NCBI RefSeq assembly: GCF_000143415.4
Contig: NW_003314264.1
Coordinates: 4,081,229 to 4,145,228, forward strand
Reading direction: 5' to 3'
DNA length: 64,000 nucleotides
Source: Selaginella moellendorffii
Lineage: Eukaryota; Plantae; Lycopodiophyta
Shown here: positions 13,298 to 55,268 of the stretch, piece after piece
Layout of the letters: each line of letters begins with the position of its first letter
Position numbering within the stretch: position 1 is the first letter of the stretch
Made by a program: the position numbers and the translations under genes
Notes under the pieces: model-generated
Seen by the model: only the letters and a program-made list of their open reading frames with translations
Database searches by the model: none
Told to the model about the DNA's origin: nothing

Positions 13298-13402
13298 GAA
13301 TATTCTGATTCTCGAATATGCTTGGACAGGAATATGCCCGACACGGGAAATGCGCGTGAATATACAGGTAGCATGTTGGTGGCATATGCCGTCGGAATAT
13401 TT
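13298..13402. promoter_or_regulatory. Cluster of 5 perfect P1BS (GNATATNC) elements plus one near match, upstream of NADP-ME
   Basis: GAATATTC 13298, GAATATGC 13314, GAATATGC 13330, GAATATAC 13358, GCATATGC 13382 and GAATATTT 13395. Confidence 0.75.
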
Positions 13403-37020: not shown

Positions 37021-38655
37021 CTATATGCTTCGATTCTGTAGCTGCAAAAGCCTGTAGGCCCTGCTCGCAGCGTAATTTCCCAGCTTGAGCTCCTGTTGTA
37101 GCTTGCAAGCACCAGCCAAAGTGCTCCATGCAACATCGTTGGGAAAGAATGGCATGTTGTTGATCAGTTCATCGGCCTGACTGAGCTCCCCCGACCTCGC
37201 AAGTATGTCCACCATGCAAGCATAATGCTCCGCCGCGGGAGTCAATCCAAACTGCGACACCATGCTTGTGAAGCACCACCAGCTGATCTTTACAAGCCCC
37301 GCATGGCTGCACGCGATGATTACGCCCAGAAATGATACCTGGTTCGCCTTGAATCCTTGCACGACCATATCCAGCAGCAACTCCACACACTCGTGGACGC
37401 ATCCAATGCGCGCAAACGCTGCAATGAGCGAGTTCCACGACAGCAAATCTCTGCCGGGCATCCTCTCGAACACCCGCTTGGAGGAGCTCGGCTGGCCGTT
37501 CAATGCGTACATGGCCAGCACGGAGTTCCACGACGCCACCTGAGAGTGCGGCATTTGCGTGAGGATCCTCATGGCGTCTTCGACGTAGCCGCTCTGGCCA
37601 AAGACCACAATAATCGAGTTCCACGACACGGAGCTTCGCGCGGGCATCGTGTCGAATATCAACTTCGCCTCCTCGACCCGGCACTGCTGACCATATATTC
37701 GAATGAGCACCGTCCATGAGACGACGTCCTTCTCGGGCATGGCATCAAAGATCCTCTTGGCCTGGCGGAGATGCCCGTTTTGGGCGTAAGCAGCAATCAA
37801 GGTGTTCCATGACACGGCATTCCACTCGGGCATCCTGTCGAAAGTCCGCTGTGCTTGCTGCAAGTAGCCGGACTGCCCGTATGCGTCCACCATGGCTGTC
37901 CAGGAAATAATGTTCCTCTCGGGCATCCCCGCAAAGAGCCTCTTGGCCGCCTCCAGCTCGCCATTCAAGACGTAAGCCTGAAAGAGAGCGTTCCACGACG
38001 CGGTGTTGTGCTCCGGCATCCGGTGGAACAAGCGCTCGGCCTGGCGGAGGTCCGAGTTCTCGCCATACCCCGAGATCATGGAGTTCCACGAGACCAAGCT
38101 CAAGAAAGGCATCTTGACAAACAGCCCCACAGCTTCATTTAAATGCCCGTTTTGGGCAAATGCTGCAACCATAGCGGACCATGCCACAAGATTTCTCTCC
38201 GGCATTTCATCGAAAACCATCTTTGCTTCTATCAAATAGTTGCTTTGTGCAAAAGCTACAAGCATGCTCGTCCACGACACGACGTTTCTCTCGGGCATGG
38301 CTTGGAAGAGTTTTCTTGCTTCCTCGACATGCCCGTTCCGGGCATATGCTTGGATCATGATGCTCCAGCTGAAAACGTTGGGGTCCCGGATGCTGGCAAA
38401 GATCCTCTGGGCCTCCTCGACGCTTCCGCAGTCGCCATACATCTGGACGAGGATATTGGCCACGAATCTATCGTCCCGGAACTCGCTGTCCAGAATGCGC
38501 GAGTGGAGAAGCCTTGCCTGCGTTAGATCACCCACCTCGCGCACCAGACGCTCGATCAAATCGCGACGCTCCTGCCGCCGCTGCTGGAGTTGGGTTCCCA
38601 GTCGCTCTCGCGGCTCCGATCCGTGTCGACACAGCGGATCGGCGCAAAGATTCAT
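37021..38655 (-). CDS. PLS-class PPR protein ending within the E domain (no DYW), single exon
   Basis: Tandem 31-aa repeats MPERN.VSW..M..AY.QNG, followed by ACSHAG, HYACMVDILARSG and MPFFPNDVAWSTL, then a stop. Confidence 0.9.
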   Translation of the reverse strand: MNLCADPLCRHGSEPRERLGTQLQQRRQERRDLIERLVREVGDLTQARLLHSRILDSEFRDDRFVANILVQMYGDCGSVEEAQRIFASIRDPNVFSWSIMIQAYARNGHVEEARKLFQAMPERNVVSWTSMLVAFAQSNYLIEAKMVFDEMPERNLVAWSAMVAAFAQNGHLNEAVGLFVKMPFLSLVSWNSMISGYGENSDLRQAERLFHRMPEHNTASWNALFQAYVLNGELEAAKRLFAGMPERNIISWTAMVDAYGQSGYLQQAQRTFDRMPEWNAVSWNTLIAAYAQNGHLRQAKRIFDAMPEKDVVSWTVLIRIYGQQCRVEEAKLIFDTMPARSSVSWNSIIVVFGQSGYVEDAMRILTQMPHSQVASWNSVLAMYALNGQPSSSKRVFERMPGRDLLSWNSLIAAFARIGCVHECVELLLDMVVQGFKANQVSFLGVIIACSHAGLVKISWWCFTSMVSQFGLTPAAEHYACMVDILARSGELSQADELINNMPFFPNDVAWSTLAGACKLQQELKLGNYAASRAYRLLQLQNRSI

Positions 38656-41232: not shown

Positions 41233-41522
41233 ACATCGGTGTGATCGGTTCTCATCGTTTCTCTTTTTGGAAACAGGACCGGATGAACAATCGAAGATCA
41301 AGCCCCGACTCCACTGACGATGACGACGATGATGATGGCAGTAACTTATCACTGTCACTAACAAGTTCCCCCGCTGGCATGAAGAACAAGGCAAAGCGGC
41401 GAAACGGGAAATACATTCGCAGGGGCAGCAGCAGCACTAGTAGCGGGCAGCCGGATCAAAATCGCGGGGAGCCGGTCATAAGATTGGATCTCACGCTCTC
41501 CATCGCCCACAAATCACCGTGA
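39749..41522 (+). CDS. GARP/G2-like MYB transcription factor of the SHLQMY type (At1g14600-like), 6 exons, with C-terminal EAR-like motifs
   Basis: [20 protein letters not shown]...[29 protein letters not shown]; LSLSL and LDLTL near the end. Exons 39749-40076, 40199-40275, 40341-40380, 40480-40678, 40773-41166, 41277-41522. Confidence 0.88.
41180..41235. repeat. Compound microsatellite (CT)14(CA)14 in the last intron of the GARP gene
   Basis: Directly visible. Confidence 0.95.
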
Positions 41523-44860: not shown

Positions 44861-46172
44861 TCAAAACGGGACCAAAGAGACGCCTTTGCCATGATGCCAA
44901 GCCAAGCTCGTCTGCGTGAGAAAGGCTGCCAGCGACCACAAGGAGAAAATGCCCAGAAGTTGCAACGATGACAGGAGCATCTGTAGCGAGCTCGTAATTG
45001 CCGTGGTCTGCACTGATGCCTCCAGAGTTTTCATGGAAAATATAAGCCCCGCGACAAGCTGTGCTGCTCTGTTTAGCTGGTGAAGACGATAAACCTGGAA
45101 TATCAAGCTTTACAAGCTGGCCTCTACGAAAAACTCATTGCCAAGCAAACCTGGAAAATCATCGGTACTAGAGGTCGAATCGATGGCTTGTCCTCGGCAA
45201 ACTTCTCTCCGCAAAATTGCACCACCAGCCCCGACACATATGGAACTAGAGCAGCGATGGCCGCGGGGCCCGTATACTTCCAGGCCACGAAGAAACTCGA
45301 AACAGCCAAGACCGTGGAGAGGGCAGTGCATACCGTGGCCGACACATTGTATCCCCAAGTGTAGGAAGCAGCAGCTAAAGCATCGCCTTTGGAACCGCGA
45401 ACACGAACAGGTCCTCGAAACTTATGAGCAACGAAAAGGAATGCTGATACTCCGATGTAAAAGTAGGCTTCCGTGAAGAACAAAATGATAAAATCTGCAT
45501 TCACGAGAGAGATTAAGTCGATCTCAATGGAGATGGAAAATAGAAAAGCGAGACAGAAGAAAGATGGTGAGAAGTACCTGTTACTACTGTATCGTCGAGA
45601 AGATATTCAAAGACGGTCCGAAAAACGTATGGCGGTAGCACGACCGAAGCAACCAGCACAAAAGGTCCAAGCAGCCAGAGAAGCGATCGTCGCTTCACTC
45701 CTGTAAGCAAACGATCTTCTCCAGCAGCTCCGCTATAGAACGAAACGAATCCAGTTTTGCCGCTGATATCTGCGTCCTCCAAAAACTCCAAGTCGATGTG
45801 ATCGGGTTCTTGAGAAGCTGCTGCTACTTCTTCTCCAGCAGGCTTCTCTTGCGAGTCGAATTCTTGCGGGCTGTTGCTGCTCGTCACCTCGTCTTTCAGA
45901 GAGACTCCACGAGACAACCGGCATTTTGATCCACCTCGGAGTCGTTCTAGTCGCGAAGAATGCAAAGCTGGGGTGATCAATCGGGAAGAAACGTTTGGAG
46001 CAACGGCAGTGAGTCGACTCGAGAGGTTTGGAGTAGCGGCAATCCTTCCTTTTAGCTTGAGCGAGCTCCTGGACCCGGTCTTTAATCGCGCTAGCTCGCT
46101 ACTCCCGATAGCGTACCTGTTATACGCTGGTTGCGCCGGGAGCAAGAGGGCCGGGGCAGCCAATCCTGCCAT
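44861..46172 (-). CDS. Conserved plant multi-pass membrane protein with a likely plastid transit peptide (At5g63040-like), 390 aa (exons 46172-45578, 45494-45151, 45094-44861)
   Basis: GFVSFY, SLLWLLGPFVLVAS, DFIILFFTEAYFY and IFQVYRLHQLNRAAQLV motifs. Two GT-AG introns keep the frame. Confidence 0.85.
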
Positions 46173-46317
46173 TACCACGACCGCGACCTCGATCGACGCC
46201 TACGCCACGTCCATTCCCTGCAAAATATCGCGATTTCTAACGCCCTAGCATGGAACACCTTCTTACAGGGAATGCGCGCAACTCTCTCGCCAAGCCCTAA
46301 CAACAATGTTCATGCCA

Positions 46318-46368
46318 GCCACGTGTCATAAGGTTCCAGCTTGGACGACACGTGTATCCAACGTGTCA
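46318..46368. promoter_or_regulatory. Three G-box/ABRE-like elements
   Basis: GCCACGTGTC, GACACGTGT and AACGTGTC within 50 bp, about 150-200 bp upstream of the minus-strand gene. Confidence 0.5.
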
Positions 46369-46431
46369 TGGCATCTGTCCTGAGATTCGGGCTTTTAGAT
46401 CAAAGATTTTTTCTTGACAGCAACGGCGGCT

Positions 46432-46767
46432 GAATATTCGATGGGGACAGTGACGCGCGAATATTCGCGCTGGGGACCACGCACGATGGATGAATATTCA
46501 CCACCCATTACCAGTGAGAATATACTCACTGAGAGCAAATAAATCGTGGCGCCATAGAAAACGATTATAGCCCAAATCTGTGAACGAGAGTCGCACACAA
46601 AAACTATAGTCCCCAAACTAGAAAGGCGACAAAGCCTGGAGAAATACCGGCATGCCGTACAAAGATTCCCATGTTCGTACTGGGCCCGCATCATCACGAA
46701 TATGCTTCTGCGCCGCGGCATATTCGGCGGGATAAGTATATGCTGCTCTTTTACGAAAGGAATATTC
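46432..46767. promoter_or_regulatory. Cluster of 8 perfect P1BS (GNATATNC) elements upstream of MYB-CC gene 1
   Basis: GAATATTC 46432, 46459, 46492; GAATATAC 46518; GAATATGC 46698; GCATATTC 46718; GTATATGC 46736; GAATATTC 46760. Confidence 0.82.
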
Positions 46768-46935
46768 GCTCGGCGACACACAAAAAGAGGGCGGGGGAGC
46801 GCGGTTTGGTGATTTTTTGTTGATGCTTTGCGCAGCGGCTGTAGGATTTTTGATCAATTGCGCGGATGGGCGTCACGGAGCTCCAGGCGAGGTGAGGCTC
46901 TAGGGGAGATCTTCCCGAAAATTCGATGATATCAT

Positions 46936-48165
46936 ATGTCTAGCATTTGTGGGAATGATCTTTCGGCTTCATTGTCCCACAGCGTCAAGGCGCTGGTGAG
47001 ATCCGGGGGTGAATTCAACCAGGACAAGGCGTGCTCTACATTCTACTACGTTCCATCGTCGGGCGAGGCATCGGCGCATCTCTCCGCCTCCGGGCTTGGA
47101 AACGATCAAAAGCCGCGGTTGCGATGGACGCCGGAGCTGCATGATCAGTTTGTCAAGGCCGTGGCGCAGCTCGGTGGCCCCGAGAGTCCGTAGTTTTCTC
47201 TCTTCAGAGTTTTTACTTTTGGTCTTTTACTAACCAAAAGAACGTTTGATTTCAGAAGCTACACCAAAGTCGGTCCTGAAGCTAATGGGCGTTCAAGGGC
47301 TAACACTTTACCATCTCAAGAGCCATCTCCAGGTAAAAAAATCTCGTTTTTCTGGAGGATTGGACACAATTTTTCCTGTGATCGTAGAAGTATAGACTTG
47401 GAATGCAAATACCCCGACCCGAGACTAGCGGCGATGGTAAAAAATCTCTTTTTCCCGCTTCTTGTCGTTGATTCGAGCTCACAAGTAACAATTCATCAAC
47501 AGGCAGGAGTAACTCCGAGGACAGCAGCAAACAACAAGAGTGAGCATTTAATTCATTTATCTTGGCCGATCTTGGAAAATCAAAACTTTGATGGTTTTCC
47601 ACCAGGAGTTTGCCTCTCACGCAGATAATTGCGGTGCACGCGGAGGTCGAGAAGAAACTCCGGGAGCAGATGGAGGTAATGACTAAGTTCGTGGAGGATC
47701 CATTCTCATTTTGATTGGTGATTTTACACGATCCATGGACAGATCCAGCAGCAGCTACAGGCCCGGATCGACGAGCAATGCCAGCACCTGTACAAGCTGA
47801 TGGAGAGCGCGAGCCCTCAGAAGAAATCGATCATGGCGGACCTGGAGGCCGCTCGAAAGCTCCAGCTCGACGGCATCATGGAGCTGTCCAAGATGTACTC
47901 GGGGCTCCAGAGCGCGGTGGAGCAGCACGGCAAGCTGGATCAAGCGACGAGCAACAACACCGCGGGGATCAAGAGGCGCCCCAACGACGATGATCCCCAA
48001 CGCCAGCTCGAGGAGGAGCAAGAGAGGGTGACAAAGTCGCTAGTGCAGTGGAAGAAGGAGCCAGTGTGGGATGACGACGAAGCGCAGCATGCATCAGGCT
48101 CCACTGCCGAGATCTCGACGGGGCTCAATCTCAGTAGCGGTCGCGGCTTAGACTTGAATGGCTAG
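46936..48165 (+). CDS. MYB-CC (PHR/PHL family) transcription factor with a divergent coiled coil and C-terminal LDLN (exons 46936-47185, 47256-47332, 47388-47436, 47503-47539, 47606-47675, 47743-48165)
   Basis: KPRLRWTPELH...[31 protein letters not shown]. The CC reads QIIAVHAEVEKKLREQMEIQQQLQARIDEQCQHL. Confidence 0.88.
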
Positions 48166-49760
48166 CTAAGATAGAGCTCCACGAAAAAAGGGTGAACAAG
48201 TAAAAGCCCTAAAAGCGAGAGGAAATGATTCGATTCTCGACAGAAAAAGAAAAAAGATTCCATTTGGTGCGGTTCCACTGTCCCGGAAAGAAAGAAAAAA
48301 GATGCGGCGAAACTTTGTGGGATTCCTCTTGCTTATGTTAATTCTAGAGGATGAACTGTACGGATACGTTGATGTTTTTCTGCATGACAGTTACTGATTG
48401 CCAAAGGGAATTGACCTAAAGCCTGGATGGATTGAAGTGAATGCGACGAAGAGCCCATTCGTGCATTGCAATGACACAATGTTCGTTTGCAAGATAAGGT
48501 GGGGAGGGCCCAATCCCTAATAAACCCCTGGACTGCATCTATATCTACACCAAGAGAGGGACAAGACGCGAGCAAAAAGGTATATTTATACTGACAATTT
48601 CTTGTTAATAGATTACATTAGTTTGGATATCTCTTGGTGATTTACAAAGTGGTGGTTTTGGAATCTCTTGCGAATTGTTTGAGCGTAATGATAGTGTTGA
48701 ACTTGCATGATTGATGACCTGTAGGCGCACCAGAGGAGAAGCATGGGAGAACCTTCTGCCAAGAATTGCGTGGTTTGCGAGATTATATATATCCATCTTC
48801 CAATCCATGTCTATATGAATGAAGCCATAAAGGTGGCAGCGATCCACCATATGTCTGGATGGATCGAGAAGGTGGCATACGAGCGTGAGAATCGTACTAG
48901 TGACAACGTTTTTAGGGTTATCCTCTATCGTGGCTCGTGTTTCTTGGTCTGGTTAACGAAAAAAGGAAACAAAATGTTAGGATACATTTTGGCTTTCCAT
49001 CTCGCAAGCAACGTAATGCATTAAAGTTCAAAAGAGGAACTTAGCTTAATTGAAAAGCCACCGGCTGCGCCCGCCACGTGTCGGTGGGCACCAGTTTTTT
49101 TTTGTGTGTGTCTTTGTTAATAATTTTTTTCTTCGCCTTGTGTTCCGCCATAGCCATCGAGCTCGCTCCCTGCTTCGCGTCCCCGCATTTCACTTCGATT
49201 TCTCTCTCAAGCAGGCGGGGCATCAATCTCTACAGTGCAACGATCTGGATTTCGACCATTGAGCGTTCCATCGCAGGTCAAGGAGGGAATTCGCAGGAAT
49301 TGCCGCGTTTCCAGTGTTTCTTGGCATCTCCTCTTCCAGCAGGGGCGCCAGACTCTCGCAGGGGACGGTAGCAGCTTCAATTCTTGCGCTCCAAGGCTGG
49401 AATCTTGGGGCTAAGATCGCAAGAATTTCTAGATTACTGTAGCATTCTCGGAGCTTCCTCTTGGTTCTAGCGCCGTTCCCTCTTCGCTCTTTCTTCTTCT
49501 TCTTCTTCTTCCTCCTTAATGTGTATCTCTGGAAAGCGAATTTCCAAGCGGTTAGGGTTCTAGCCTAGAGGATCGCGAACTCGCTCGCTCGCTCGCCTAG
49601 AAATTTTTCTTTTCCCTGGGCTTTTTTTCTTCTTTTTTTCTCAATTTTTTCTCATTCGACAGGCGGTATACTATATCACAAAGATTATTAGTTGGCAAGG
49701 CCTTATCCAAATCTGTGATGTCCGTATCGCGCGTTTTGGGTTGTAGCGTCTACAGCCGAA

Positions 49761-51265
49761 ATGCTGTATGAGGCTCTCAAGCAATCCACGACAAAGATGT
49801 CGCAACACCAAAGGCCGTCGCTTCCATCTCCTTCCCCGCATCATCACCAAGCGCTGTCCGATCCACAGAGAATTGCGAGCGGCTCTTCTCCCGGCGCTAC
49901 GAGCTCTGGCGGCGGAGGAGGAGCAAGCAGCAACGCCGTCTCGAATGCGGCGGCCGCCGCCGCTAAGCAGCGCCTCCGATGGACGCCGGACCTTCACGAG
50001 CGATTCGTAGAGGCTGTTGGGCAGCTGGGAGGAGCCGACAGTAAGTTTCTCTTAGATCTCCGAAACACTGTTGTGTGTTGCTTTCGGTCAGGAGCTACTC
50101 CCAAGGGTGTTCTTCGCGTAATGGGCGTGCAAGGACTCACAATCTATCATGTCAAGAGTCATTTACAGGTAGGGGGTGATTGGTTTAGCTCGTTTTTTCT
50201 ATCCTGTCCTCTGCCAGTGATCATGATCTCTGGTGTCTCCGCAGAAGTACCGACTTGCGAAGTACATACCAGATCCGATGGGCGATGGTAAGTTCAACTA
50301 GTTAGATTTTCTGACCGGTCTGCTTCCTGTGTTTGAATGCATGGGAATGGCCCCGAGGGAATCCAGTTTGGAATTAAACTATGTCTGACAGGGAAATCGG
50401 ACAAAAGGAGGCACCCGGATTTGCCGAGTCTCGGAGGATCGTAAGTTGGTGAATGGGTTTTTTCATTGTAAACTTGCTACAACTCCCCCTCTCCTCTCAA
50501 CAGTGTTCAGATCAACGAGGCATTGCGTATGCAAATGGAGGTACAAAAGAGGCTTCAGGAGCAGCTCGAGGTAAGCTGTTTTCCGTGCTTTTATGATTTC
50601 TTCTCCTCCCGCGAGGACAGAGGGACACCGACTTAATATGTCCTGGATGGAAAAACCTGAAACGCAGGTGCAACGGCACCTCCAATTGCGAATCGAAGCG
50701 CAAGGGAAGTACCTGCAGAAAATTATTGACGAGCAGAAGAAGATGAGTGGGGGTCTTGACAACCAGCCAGGTGCCAGTCCCGGATCGACGCAAGTTTTTA
50801 GCTCAGATATAACAGTCCAAGGCTCAGATCTCAAATATGAATTGACCGAGAGCGTACCAGGTCTGATGGATCCACCAGGAGGAGGTGGAGGAGGAGCTTT
50901 GCCAGCGATCACATCAGCGCTTTCGGCACTGGGATCAATGGCAGCTAACAACAGTTTGTCGCGAGAAAACTCGCCGGCGTCAGTCCCAAATCCTTTGGGA
51001 GCCAGTTACACTTTACTCAACAACAACAACAACAACATTAGGACCGATGACGCGGTAGTAGTATCACCGAGACACCAGGAATCAGTAGAAGAGTATCTTC
51101 ATTCGAAATCTTTACAACAGCAGCAGCAGTCTTACCACCATTCGAGTTATTTGCAGTGTAACACAGCAGGTATGCTTTTCAGTCCTGTTTCCAGGAATTA
51201 AGTTGGTTTCTGTTTTGGTGCAGGCAGGCTTCCATGACCACAACACTGGCGAGAGTTTTCTGTAA
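49761..51265 (+). CDS. PHL7: MYB-CC transcription factor, PHL7-like; 3' end uncertain (51201 if the last intron is not spliced)
   Basis: [19 protein letters not shown]...[36 protein letters not shown]; [43 protein letters not shown]. Confidence 0.88.
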
Positions 51266-51441
51266 TATGTAGGAGCTCTATAGCCGCCGCAGCAAACGAC
51301 TTTGTCCACTTTGGTACGATCGTTTCTTGCCGCTTGTTGAAAGAATTGAGACTTTTGTAACCGCGTTCCTGCTGTACTTTTTTTTTTCTTCTAGACTTCT
51401 AGAATGGGAGAACGAGAAAAATATTATATCGGAGAGAAAGC

Positions 51442-53775
51442 CTACCAAAAGTCGGCACAAGCGCACGCTCCATCTTGAAAGTGGTGAAAGCGATGAGCAT
51501 CTCTCACAGTGATCGCCCTCTTGGCGATCCGGGACATGAACTTCGTGGCGGTGTGGCAGTCGGTGCACATCCGCAAGTTCTTCACCACGAAGAGAGGATC
51601 GCTCCTCCCGCGAGTGCTGATCATCCCAAACACCACCGCCAGCTTCTCGCTGTGGAAGCTCAGCGATTGCTCCTTCTCCTCGTCGTCGAAGTCGTGGAGT
51701 ACGTTGCTCGTATCGGGTACGTATCCGGCCTCTCTCATCTTTGCATTGAGACTATGGAGCTCGTCCAGGATCGCGCTGATTTCGGGGTGGTTTTTCCCTC
51801 CCGCCACGAACTCGTGAGCTCTACCTTTGATCGTGATGCTACTTAGACCCGCGGGCTTTCTTAAACGCCTGGCGTCCATAGCCTTCCTAACGGAAATCCC
51901 ATCGCCGTGCTTACCAGCGGCATCGTAGAGCCTTGAGAGTAGCACGTACGGAGAGGAGCACACCGGGTTGGCATTTGTGGCCCGTCGGGCGAGCCTGGCG
52001 CCACGGCCCACGTCTCCGTGCGTACGGCAGCCCGCGAGGAGGGACTTCCACGCGGTATATTCCGGCTGGAATGGCATGGCGTCGAGGAGATCCTCGCCGT
52101 CCATCAGATGGCCCGTTCTGGCCAGAAGATCCACCATGCATGTGTAGTGGGCCGCGTGTGGAGCGAGCGCGAAATCTCCGACCAGCGAGAGGAAGTAGCG
52201 GTGGCCGAGATCGAGGAGGCCGGCGTGGCTGCAAGCGCTGACCATCGAGACGAATGTGACGGCGTCGGGATGGATCCCGGAGAGAATCGCGCGCTGGAAG
52301 AGATCGGCAGCTTCGCCGGCGCGGCCGCTCTGGGCGTAGGCGCCCAGCATCGAGTTGAGGAGGATCGCGTCGCAGAAGGCCATGGCGTCGAAGAGCGATC
52401 GCGCTTCGTCCAGGCGGCCGCATTTGGCGTAGAAGTTCACGAGCGCGGTGGCGAGGCTGGCCTCAACGAAGATCTCGCCCTGGCTTGCAAGGAGGAGCTC
52501 TTCGTGGAGAAGTTTTCCCTCGCGCAGCGCCGTGAGGATCGTGCACGCATCCAGCGCGCTCACGAAGCTGATCCCGTCGGGGTGGATCCCTTCCAGATCC
52601 ATGCCCGCGAAGATCCCCAGCGCCTGGCGAGCGTGGCCGTTCTGGGAGAACGCCGCGAGGAGCGCGTTCCAGGAGATCACGTCGCGCAGATCCCCGGCGC
52701 TATCGAAGAGATCCTTGGCGCGAGCGATCTCGCCGTGGAGGCCATAGGCCGCGATCATCGCATTCACCGCTGCCGCGTCCTTGATCGGGATCGCGTCGAA
52801 CAGATCCCGGGCCTCTTGCAAGAAGCCGCTGTGGGCGAAGGCGGTGACGATCGCGGTCCAGATCACTACGTCCGTGAGCGGCATCCGCTTGAAGAGATCC
52901 CACGCCCGGTGGAGATCGCCGCTGTGGACACAGCCCTGGATCATCGCGATCCAGGATACCATGTCCCGGAAGGGCAGCGCCTGGAAGAGCTCAAGCGCGT
53001 CGGGGAGGCGACGGTTGCGACCCATCCCCGAGATCAAGGCGTTCCAGCACACCTCGTTCCACTGCGGCATCAAACCAAAGAGCTCGGTGGCGTTATCAAG
53101 ATGCCCGGCTTGGGCATAACCTCCAATCATGGTATTCCACGTCACCACGTTTCGTACGGGCGCCCGGTCAAAGATCTCTCGCGCGTGGGTACACAGGCAT
53201 CGCTGTGTGTAACCCGCGATTAGCACATTCCACGTCGCTGCGTCGCGGATCTTCATGGAATTGAAGAGATTCCTTGCCTCGGCCAAGTTCCCCTGGCGGG
53301 CAAATGCTGATATCAAGGTGTTATACGACACGGTGTTCTTGTACGGCATCTCGTCAAAGAAAAGCTTTGCATCTCGAAAGCTTCCATAGCGGGCGTAGCC
53401 AGAGAGCATCCCATTCCACGAGACGACGTCCTTGTTTGGCGTCCGATCGAAAGTTCTTGCTGCGAGATCCAGATACCCATTCTGGGCATATGCTGCGACC
53501 ATGACATTGTGAGAGAATGCGGTCGGATTCCGGATAGAATCGAAGCAGATGACGGCGTCGGCCACGCAGCCGCATCTTCCGTACATCTGCACGAGTAATG
53601 TGCCCAGCAGGGTGTGGCGATCCGAGCCCAGCCGCCGGAGCTCCGAGTGGATGCGCTTGCCATTGGCGAGATCCCTGGACAGGCAGCACTGGCGAAGCAG
53701 CGACGCATAGATCGATTCATCGCGGTGGCTGGATTCCTTGCAGAAAGATCGCCGAGCGATGTCCCGGCATTTCAT
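51442..53775 (-). CDS. PLS-class PPR protein with E and complete DYW deaminase domain (organellar C-to-U RNA editing factor), single exon
   Basis: PPR array, PG-box-like KPAGLSSI, HSEKLA, KNLRMCTDCH and terminal CACADFW. Confidence 0.95.
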   Translation of the reverse strand: MKCRDIARRSFCKESSHRDESIYASLLRQCCLSRDLANGKRIHSELRRLGSDRHTLLGTLLVQMYGRCGCVADAVICFDSIRNPTAFSHNVMVAAYAQNGYLDLAARTFDRTPNKDVVSWNGMLSGYARYGSFRDAKLFFDEMPYKNTVSYNTLISAFARQGNLAEARNLFNSMKIRDAATWNVLIAGYTQRCLCTHAREIFDRAPVRNVVTWNTMIGGYAQAGHLDNATELFGLMPQWNEVCWNALISGMGRNRRLPDALELFQALPFRDMVSWIAMIQGCVHSGDLHRAWDLFKRMPLTDVVIWTAIVTAFAHSGFLQEARDLFDAIPIKDAAAVNAMIAAYGLHGEIARAKDLFDSAGDLRDVISWNALLAAFSQNGHARQALGIFAGMDLEGIHPDGISFVSALDACTILTALREGKLLHEELLLASQGEIFVEASLATALVNFYAKCGRLDEARSLFDAMAFCDAILLNSMLGAYAQSGRAGEAADLFQRAILSGIHPDAVTFVSMVSACSHAGLLDLGHRYFLSLVGDFALAPHAAHYTCMVDLLARTGHLMDGEDLLDAMPFQPEYTAWKSLLAGCRTHGDVGRGARLARRATNANPVCSSPYVLLSRLYDAAGKHGDGISVRKAMDARRLRKPAGLSSITIKGRAHEFVAGGKNHPEISAILDELHSLNAKMREAGYVPDTSNVLHDFDDEEKEQSLSFHSEKLAVVFGMISTRGRSDPLFVVKNLRMCTDCHTATKFMSRIAKRAITVRDAHRFHHFQDGACACADFW

Positions 53776-54675: not shown

Positions 54676-55268
54676 ATGCGAGAGAATATTCCGCGAACGT
54701 TTGCCCTCGCATATGCTCCAGAATCTTGCCTTGTAGCTTATACTCTAGAATCTTGCGACACGTGTATCAATGACATTGCAACGTTTAGGCTAAATATCCA
54801 CAAAGCAATTTGGGCGGGGCGATTTTTCCAGTTCGCGCGCGAGCGCGGCAAGCGATTTGTCGGAATCGAACCCTGATTTTCAGTTTGTCTTTCTTGCCGG
54901 GGCGGCGCTCGTGGTTCCTCGCGATTGATCGATCCATCCATCGTCCATCGGCCACGAGGTCAGTTTTTTAGGTCTTCCATCCATCTGCGCCATCTTCTTG
55001 CACAGTGGAATCAAAAGGATTTCCTCTCTTTCTTTCCTTTCTTCCTTTTTTTCTCGGTCTCTTGGGATGATTAGGACAGGGTTTTACTTTTGACCGTGAT
55101 AGCACTTTCTTTTGTGGGTCGATCCATCCGTTCTACGGCACTGTTAGTCAGAAGAGAGCTAAAAAATCGTTTTTTTTTGTTCGTTGCTAGGCTGCATTCG
55201 ATCTATAGCACTGTTTAGTCAGAAGAGAGCTAAAAAATTTGTTCTTTGTTAGGCTGAAGGAGAGAAGT

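Follow-up and report, generated by a model that had tools for sequence, protein, structure and literature searches.

Why should a gene for a MYB-CC transcription factor carry, directly in front of its transcript, eight copies of P1BS, the binding site of PHR1-family MYB-CC factors? The question is raised by a stretch of the Selaginella moellendorffii genome (64,000 nucleotides, positions 4,081,229 to 4,145,228 of contig NW_003314264.1 in assembly GCF_000143415.4; hereafter the window, whose own numbering is used throughout). In it an array of perfect P1BS elements, GNATATNC, precedes a strongly diverged MYB-CC gene. On the prevailing view, regulation of PHR factors is chiefly post-translational, through SPX proteins that act as inositol-pyrophosphate sensors. 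The array itself is genuine and greatly exceeds what chance would give. The explanation toward which we lean, with some reserve, is that it is a homotypic cluster of PHR-type dimer sites forming the proximal promoter of a second-tier MYB-CC paralogue that is lineage-specific and fast-evolving but constrained. This suggests a phosphate-induced second-tier regulator in S. moellendorffii, of a kind already known in rice.

The P1BS array and its setting

DNA motif search returned exactly eight perfect GNATATNC sites at 46432-46767, a span of 336 bp, as the original prediction had counted. They fall into two groups of four, neither assigned a strand. The distal group (46432..46525) holds GAATATTC three times, at 46432, 46459 and 46492, followed by GAATATAC at 46518; the proximal group (46698..46767) holds GAATATGC at 46698, GCATATTC at 46718, GTATATGC at 46736 and a further GAATATTC at 46760. 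The next GNATATNC site after the array is at 52055. Chance predicts about 0.05 sites in 336 bp, against the 8 observed; in Markov-1 simulations the top count per 336-bp span was 1-3, never more than 3, and the Poisson probability of at least eight sites is ~1e-15 per position, or ~3e-7 across the 2.1e8-bp assembly. The perfect palindrome GAATATTC makes up half of the array (4/8), and all sites but one contain at least one GAAT half-site; GAAT accounts for 16 of the 26 half-sites across the window's two GNATATNC clusters.

Descent of the block from a dispersed repeat had been named beforehand as an observation that would undo its link to phosphate. A repeat search on the array found just the cores and a few flanking bases repeated, with no longer unit, and the 12-bp flanks of the eight sites share 7.0 of 24 matches, compared with 7.2 ± 0.4 for positions drawn at random from that spacer. 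Because the sites are alike only in their 8-bp cores, the array is not a duplicated block; a tandem or dispersed repeat origin is ruled out, since the repeated unit does not extend past the cores and the window has the block only once. A second haplotype was available for comparison: the loci on GL377568.1 (the window) and GL377652.1, both of GCA_000143415.2, were fetched around the two copies of the window's intronless PPR protein, the allelic copy being XP_002988301.2. All eight sites are present on GL377652.1, identical and in register, and the 6 single-nucleotide polymorphisms and one 11-bp indel that separate the haplotypes over the 483-bp spacer around the array are all outside the cores.

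The array stands before an expressed gene. RNA evidence came as assembled contigs, from runs without condition labels or usable depth. Twenty runs from eight studies contain 23-46% of the words sampled, close to the proportion of the stretch that is exonic, and spliced contigs in four of four runs from four studies give six introns, all GT..AG. The messenger RNA (mRNA) lies at 46773..48309 on the plus strand, with its 5′ end near 46773 (contigs from two studies, X2 and X3, begin at 46773/46774) and 3′ ends at 48240-48309. Five introns matched prediction; the sixth (46892-46982) is new from the contigs and deletes ATG 46936. That ATG is ruled out as the gene start, since all four runs splice 46891 to 46983. 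The contigs define a coding sequence for 294 amino acids (46866..48165, plus strand, stop included) in seven coding exons: 46866-46891, 46983-47185, 47256-47332, 47388-47436, 47503-47539, 47606-47675 and 47743-48165. Exons 2-4 encode the Myb domain and exons 6-7 the coiled coil, and the annotated start in GCA_000143415.2 maps to the same ATG 46866.

Sites 170-500 bp upstream of a MYB-CC gene had originally been proposed. An expressed MYB-CC gene is indeed downstream; its start and the distances were wrong. Because intron 46892-46982 removes ATG 46936, the sites lie 99-434 bp ahead of the true ATG and 6-341 bp ahead of the point where the transcript begins. Counted from the mRNA 5′ end the array thus spans -341 to -6, the distal group occupying -341 to -248 and the proximal group -75 to -6. 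One mark of a PHR target is P1BS in the promoter or 5′ untranslated region, and here eight sites fall in the 341 bp before the start of the mRNA. At -37, the GTATATGC site includes TATAT and could double as a TATA-like element, the promoter having no TATA box besides. The 93-nt leader has a single upstream ATG (46823); it opens an upstream reading frame of 32 codons (46823..47012, plus strand) that extends across intron 1 and runs over the main ATG in a different frame.

On its other side the array faces a second gene. Leftward contigs stop at 46288/46289 (X2, X3), and the CT..AC joint of one of them, at 46216-46266, places this transcript, which we call gene U, on the minus strand (44861..46288; 390 amino acids, 3 coding exons, ATG 46172, stop 44861). 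The gap between the two transcripts' 5′ ends, 46290..46772, is therefore a divergent (bidirectional) promoter of 483 bp, with no strand of its own. In some gene U transcripts an intron of the 5′ untranslated region, 46217-46265, is spliced. The gene U product looks like a membrane protein; it matched no Pfam family, and in the Atlas it pointed only faintly to Mpo1-like proteins (score 0.91, low recognition). Three ACGTGTC (ABRE/G-box-like) boxes at 46321-46367 lie 33-79 bp upstream of the gene U 5′ end, between it and the array.

Because the promoter is bidirectional, the distal four sites may serve gene U. Carried further, the argument would make gene U the main gene driven by the array (or by its distal half at the least), with the MYB-CC gene a bystander. 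P1BS is palindromic and active in both directions (PMC5398999), and the distal group is 144-237 bp from the gene U 5′ end, compared with 248-341 bp from the MYB-CC start. The proximal group, however, is at most 75 bp from the MYB-CC start and 410-479 bp from gene U, and the three ACGTGTC boxes look like gene U's own proximal elements; we think it very improbable that the MYB-CC gene is the bystander.

A different objection is that GNATATNC clusters could be a general promoter feature of this genome, read by some abundant MYB-related factor, in which case they would tell little about phosphate and the link to a PHR-like gene would be coincidental. The whole window has 23 GNATATNC sites, compared with 10.3 ± 3.5 in shuffles, and there are clusters at unrelated genes. 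A second array, of five GNATATNC sites in 92 bp (13298-13389), is upstream of an NADP-malic enzyme gene (coding from ~13745), and a pair consisting of GAATATTC and GCATATGC, 25 bp apart (54684-54716), comes right after the stop of a Ycf54-like gene. NADP-malic enzyme, however, is part of a classical phosphate-starvation bypass, and both the canonical MYB-CC neighbor described below and most genes of the window have no sites. Coincidence is in our judgment unlikely.

The composition of the sites bears on which protein reads them. The array might be a target mainly of other GARP factors with the same core specificity, either NIGT1/HHO-type repressors, which bind GAATATTC as dimers, or KANADI-like proteins, whose half-sites are GNATA(A/T). 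In that case the gene would answer to nitrate, to developmental signals or to nitrogen-phosphorus cross-talk. The GAATATTC form taken by four of the eight sites is a documented NIGT1 site common to PHR1 at NIGT1 promoters, and NIGT1-like genes are present in S. moellendorffii (PMC11082045); a third GARP gene lies ~7 kb upstream. The other four forms, GAATATAC, GAATATGC, GCATATTC and GTATATGC, however, fit P1BS and not the strict NIGT1 palindrome. Joint sites in Arabidopsis are bound by both factor types, so that this proposal is not exclusive of PHR binding; GARP factors of another type as the main readers of the array seem an unlikely answer.

The divergent MYB-CC protein

By its sequence the product is a real MYB-CC factor, and a strongly divergent one. 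It was compared through its exon pieces. The Myb pieces match the MYB chains of AtPHR1 (6J4R, E 3e-8) and OsPHR2 (7D3T, E 8e-7) in PDB, and the recognition helix, KSHLQKYR, is intact and fits the SHLQ(K/M)(Y/F) of a GARP-type Myb domain; Pfam PF00249 is on record for the public gene model, which is fused (see below). The coiled-coil region (47607..47811, plus strand; LTQIIAVHAEVEKKLREQME / IQQQLQARIDEQCQHLYKLMESA) is split by intron 47676-47742 and reads EKKLREQMEIQQ, with the motif LREQME, not LHEQLE, while its position and heptad core are kept. Pfam PF14379, the LHEQLE coiled coil, has a 'weak' score on the public model and E 0.026 for the exon-7 piece; the short exon pieces of this coiled coil found no match in PDB. 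Its register was set via the tandem neighbor, which does match the AtPHR1 and OsPHR2 coiled coils there: AtPHR1 GITEALRLQMEVQKQLHEQLE/IQRNLQLRIEEQGKYLQ aligns with PLTQIIAVHAEVEKKLREQME/IQQQLQARIDEQCQHLY of the divergent gene. The oligomer residues L317, L319, L327, I333, L337 and I341 of AtPHR1 (PMC7810988) are I, V, L, I, L and I here.

The extent of divergence was gauged against a sample of 44 full-domain PHL7-like proteins of land plants, fetched with the neighbor's last exon. Among these the coiled coil is almost invariant; the divergent protein departs from their consensus at 23 of 38 positions, and the next most deviant, a fern protein, at 9. Its Myb domain departs at 18 positions, where the sample maximum is 11. 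A profile built from a PHL7-like protein and the exon pieces was dominated by angiosperm PHL7 and brought up no Selaginella relatives. Between the two haplotypes the coding sequence has 4 differences in 885 bp (3 synonymous, and N235S in the tail) and the introns 11 in 415 bp (Fisher P = 0.001). The gene is strongly diverged, yet under constraint. A decaying pseudogene is ruled out, since both haplotypes preserve the full reading frame, introns are removed from the mRNA, and variation in the coding sequence is six times lower than in the introns.

Replacement of the SPX-facing histidine by arginine and of the arginine by glutamine had been read directly from the coiled coil, and alignment to the PDB chains of AtPHR1 and OsPHR2 bears it out: K325 of AtPHR1 is kept, H328 is R and R335 is Q. 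The wider interface was taken from the rice complexes (PMC8639918, PMC8948245). In OsPHR2 numbering the changed contacts are R302 (to M), L342 (to A), Q345 (to E), H349 (to R), L352 (to M) and R356 (to Q), and those kept are R248, R250, H294, K297, Y298, K346 and E353. Where an SPX-controlled PHR has the KHR surface with L342, L352 and R302, this protein has K/R/Q, A, M and M. In the 44 PHL7-like proteins the L342 position is M in 43, the H349 position is H in 38 and Q in 6 but never R, and the R356 position is R in 41. Among OsPHR2 mutants assayed in vitro, L342A no longer bound SPX1, H349A and R356A were impaired in forming the complex, and R302A bound more weakly (PMC8639918, PMC8948245); Arabidopsis KHR mutants lost SPX1 binding and kept P1BS binding and oligomer state (PMC7810988). 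Since L342 and R302 are changed as well (to A and M), weakened SPX binding is more plausible than it appeared from the original prediction, and SPX control of the divergent protein is probably weakened.

The strongest version of this idea, which we consider possible but doubtful, would make the protein a naturally SPX-insensitive PHR paralogue controlled solely by a dense P1BS array that it recognizes itself. It would then act in the lycophyte starvation circuit as a transcriptional positive-feedback latch, giving memory or bistability, that bypasses inositol-pyrophosphate sensing, or would make canonical PHRs SPX-resistant as their heterodimer partner.

The sign of the factor's activity may depend on its C terminus. 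An EAR-like end had been proposed for the terminal GLNLSSGRGLDLNG (48121..48162, plus strand), which is in a predicted disordered tail. EAR motifs are defined as LxLxL or DLNx(x)P, and this proposal fails on both: LNLSS and LDLNG do not fit the first, nor DLNG-stop the second (PMC6283911, PMC9956375). Just upstream is an acidic, tryptophan-containing stretch, EPVWDDDEAQ, with a net charge of -5 per 20 residues; to judge by composition, it looks like an activation region at least as much as the terminus looks like an EAR motif. A single-sequence AF2 model of exon 7 has three helices and then a disordered 37-residue tail (pLDDT 70, pTM 0.31), and is too weak for a fold search. The last exon (140 amino acids) had no match in the Atlas, and a search of 1.84 billion representatives brought up three matches in all, each weak and coiled-coil-like; its own product was missed too, although NCBI proteins of S. 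moellendorffii are in that collection, so that this blank does not amount to an absence of relatives.

A repressor or dominant-negative product, one that dimerizes with canonical PHRs or occupies P1BS without activating, would turn the circuit into negative feedback, and the LDLN tail may be a route to it by recruiting TOPLESS. The protein is short, with only 51 residues ahead of the Myb domain; it ends in GLNLSSGRGLDLNG, its surface residues are much altered around a preserved dimer core, and repressing MYB-CC members have been suggested for Marchantia (PMC7672586). With neither EAR consensus present, however, and with a tail of the acidic, tryptophan-bearing sort typical of activation regions, we consider repression quite unlikely.

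The tandem neighbor and the public annotation

A canonical MYB-CC gene follows in tandem (49087..51500, plus strand; coding sequence 49761-51238, 343 amino acids; mRNA start ~49087). Motif search of the window found no P1BS in the spacer upstream of it. The two genes have intron positions in common, the coiled-coil intron falling at the same point, and their proteins are 50% identical over 142 aligned residues. In the neighbor the coiled-coil motif is LQEQLE, not LHEQLE (50504-50570), which makes the equivalent of H328 a glutamine, as in 6 of the 44 PHL7-like proteins; the SPX-contact histidine is therefore not universal in the PHL7-like subfamily. A CACGTGTC box at 49066-49073 is just upstream of the neighbor's mRNA start. 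Contigs of runs X1 and X3 match the window rightward from 49067 and extend leftward by 255 letters that are absent from it; this extension may be an alternative first exon of the neighbor that lies far away, or else an assembly chimera.

In the public annotation (GCA_000143415.2) the two genes form a single gene, 46866-51265, with two Myb and two coiled-coil domains, whose product has 793 amino acids here and 692 on the other haplotype (L002 12511-16910; L001 12510-16920). The contigs contain two separate mRNAs, and coverage of 48331-48891 is zero in all four runs, so the fusion is probably an annotation error.

The third GARP-type Myb gene lies at ~40016 on the plus strand and ends at 41522, and is annotated as 427 amino acids with a Myb domain only. 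Lying ~7 kb upstream, it makes three GARP genes within 12 kb. The window also has a GCATATGC site at 38342.

A candidate second-tier regulator

If the array is the promoter of a second-tier MYB-CC paralogue, as we favor, the circuit might run as follows. Under low phosphate, a constitutively expressed canonical PHR would be released from SPX; the P1BS-less tandem neighbor is one candidate for it. The released PHR would occupy the array and switch the divergent MYB-CC gene on, and through the distal group it may switch gene U on as well. Since the P1BS-reading helix and the coiled-coil core are kept, the divergent product should in turn recognize this motif, also in the promoter of its own gene, either as a homodimer or paired with a canonical PHR. 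Because four SPX-contact positions are replaced, its activity would probably be set mostly by transcription, and not by SPX and inositol pyrophosphate. It would thus amplify or latch the starvation response at a second tier, like OsPHR4 in rice.

Several points weigh against this proposal. RNA contigs show the presence of the mRNA, not its level, and the overlapping upstream reading frame may limit its translation. Conservation of the array rests on the comparison of two haplotypes only, and that none of the 7 spacer variants falls within the cores (64 bp in all) does not reach significance (P = 0.37). Of the two genes, gene U is the closer to the distal group, and half of the sites also suit NIGT1. 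SPX binding may persist, in view of the residue at H349, still basic as R, and of the retained K346, E353, H294, K297 and Y298.

PHL2 and PHL3 are reportedly induced by low phosphate. For a PHR paralogue that is itself a P1BS target there is a precedent in rice, where OsPHR1-4, OsPHR4 included, bind P1BS in the OsPHR4 promoter and OsPHR1/2/3 activate the gene (PMC6947268). MpPHR1 is induced by low phosphate (PMC7672586). Our gene resembles OsPHR4, and similarly OsPHR3, PHL2/PHL3 and MpPHR1, in being a MYB-CC gene with P1BS in its own promoter, and it shares with PHL2/PHL3 a short N terminus and an extra C-terminal region (PMC6174329). It differs from the OsPHR4 group in its far denser sites (8 in 336 bp, abutting the transcript start), in a heavily diverged coiled coil (LREQME, not LHEQLE, with over half of the positions off consensus), in the four replaced SPX contacts and in 140 C-terminal residues without detectable relatives, the blank being of limited weight; for our gene induction is proposed only.

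AtPHR1 and OsPHR2 share with it the SHLQKYR of the Myb domain, the domain order and the coiled-coil core residues for dimer and tetramer (PMC7810988). In contrast to theirs, its KHR is K-R-Q, and the equivalents of OsPHR2 L342, R302 and Q345 are A, M and E. Transcription of AtPHR1 is largely constitutive, whereas the promoter here is packed with P1BS; in its lack of upstream P1BS it is the tandem neighbor that is like AtPHR1. Changes at the same positions have been engineered in AtPHR1 KHR/A and the OsPHR2 interface mutants. Such alanine mutants have weaker SPX binding and constitutive starvation responses, with P1BS binding and oligomer state kept (PMC7810988, PMC8639918), and single mutants were mild in planta (PMC7810988). 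The changes here differ in being natural and not to alanine, and H to R keeps the charge.

NIGT1/HHO repressors are likewise nutrient-regulated GARP factors with feedback loops, whose own promoters contain GAATATTC common to PHR1 (PMC11082045); they have the coiled coil upstream of the Myb domain and a true EAR motif, whereas the order here is that of PHR1 and no consensus EAR is present. The closest promoter designs are the EZ2 enhancer, with two P1BS, and its multimerized synthetic promoter, in which several P1BS near a core promoter act in both directions and in a copy-dependent manner, more P1BS copies giving stronger low-phosphate induction (PMC5398999). The array differs from these in that it occurs naturally between two endogenous genes and comprises eight sites in two groups.

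Since the public model merges both genes, surveys of MYB-CC factors in Selaginella will have miscounted this gene and missed its odd coiled coil. If the proposed circuit is true, phosphate signaling in an early vascular plant would have been rewired toward transcriptional feed-forward control, and the divergent protein would provide a natural test of the SPX interface mapped in the rice and Arabidopsis structures.

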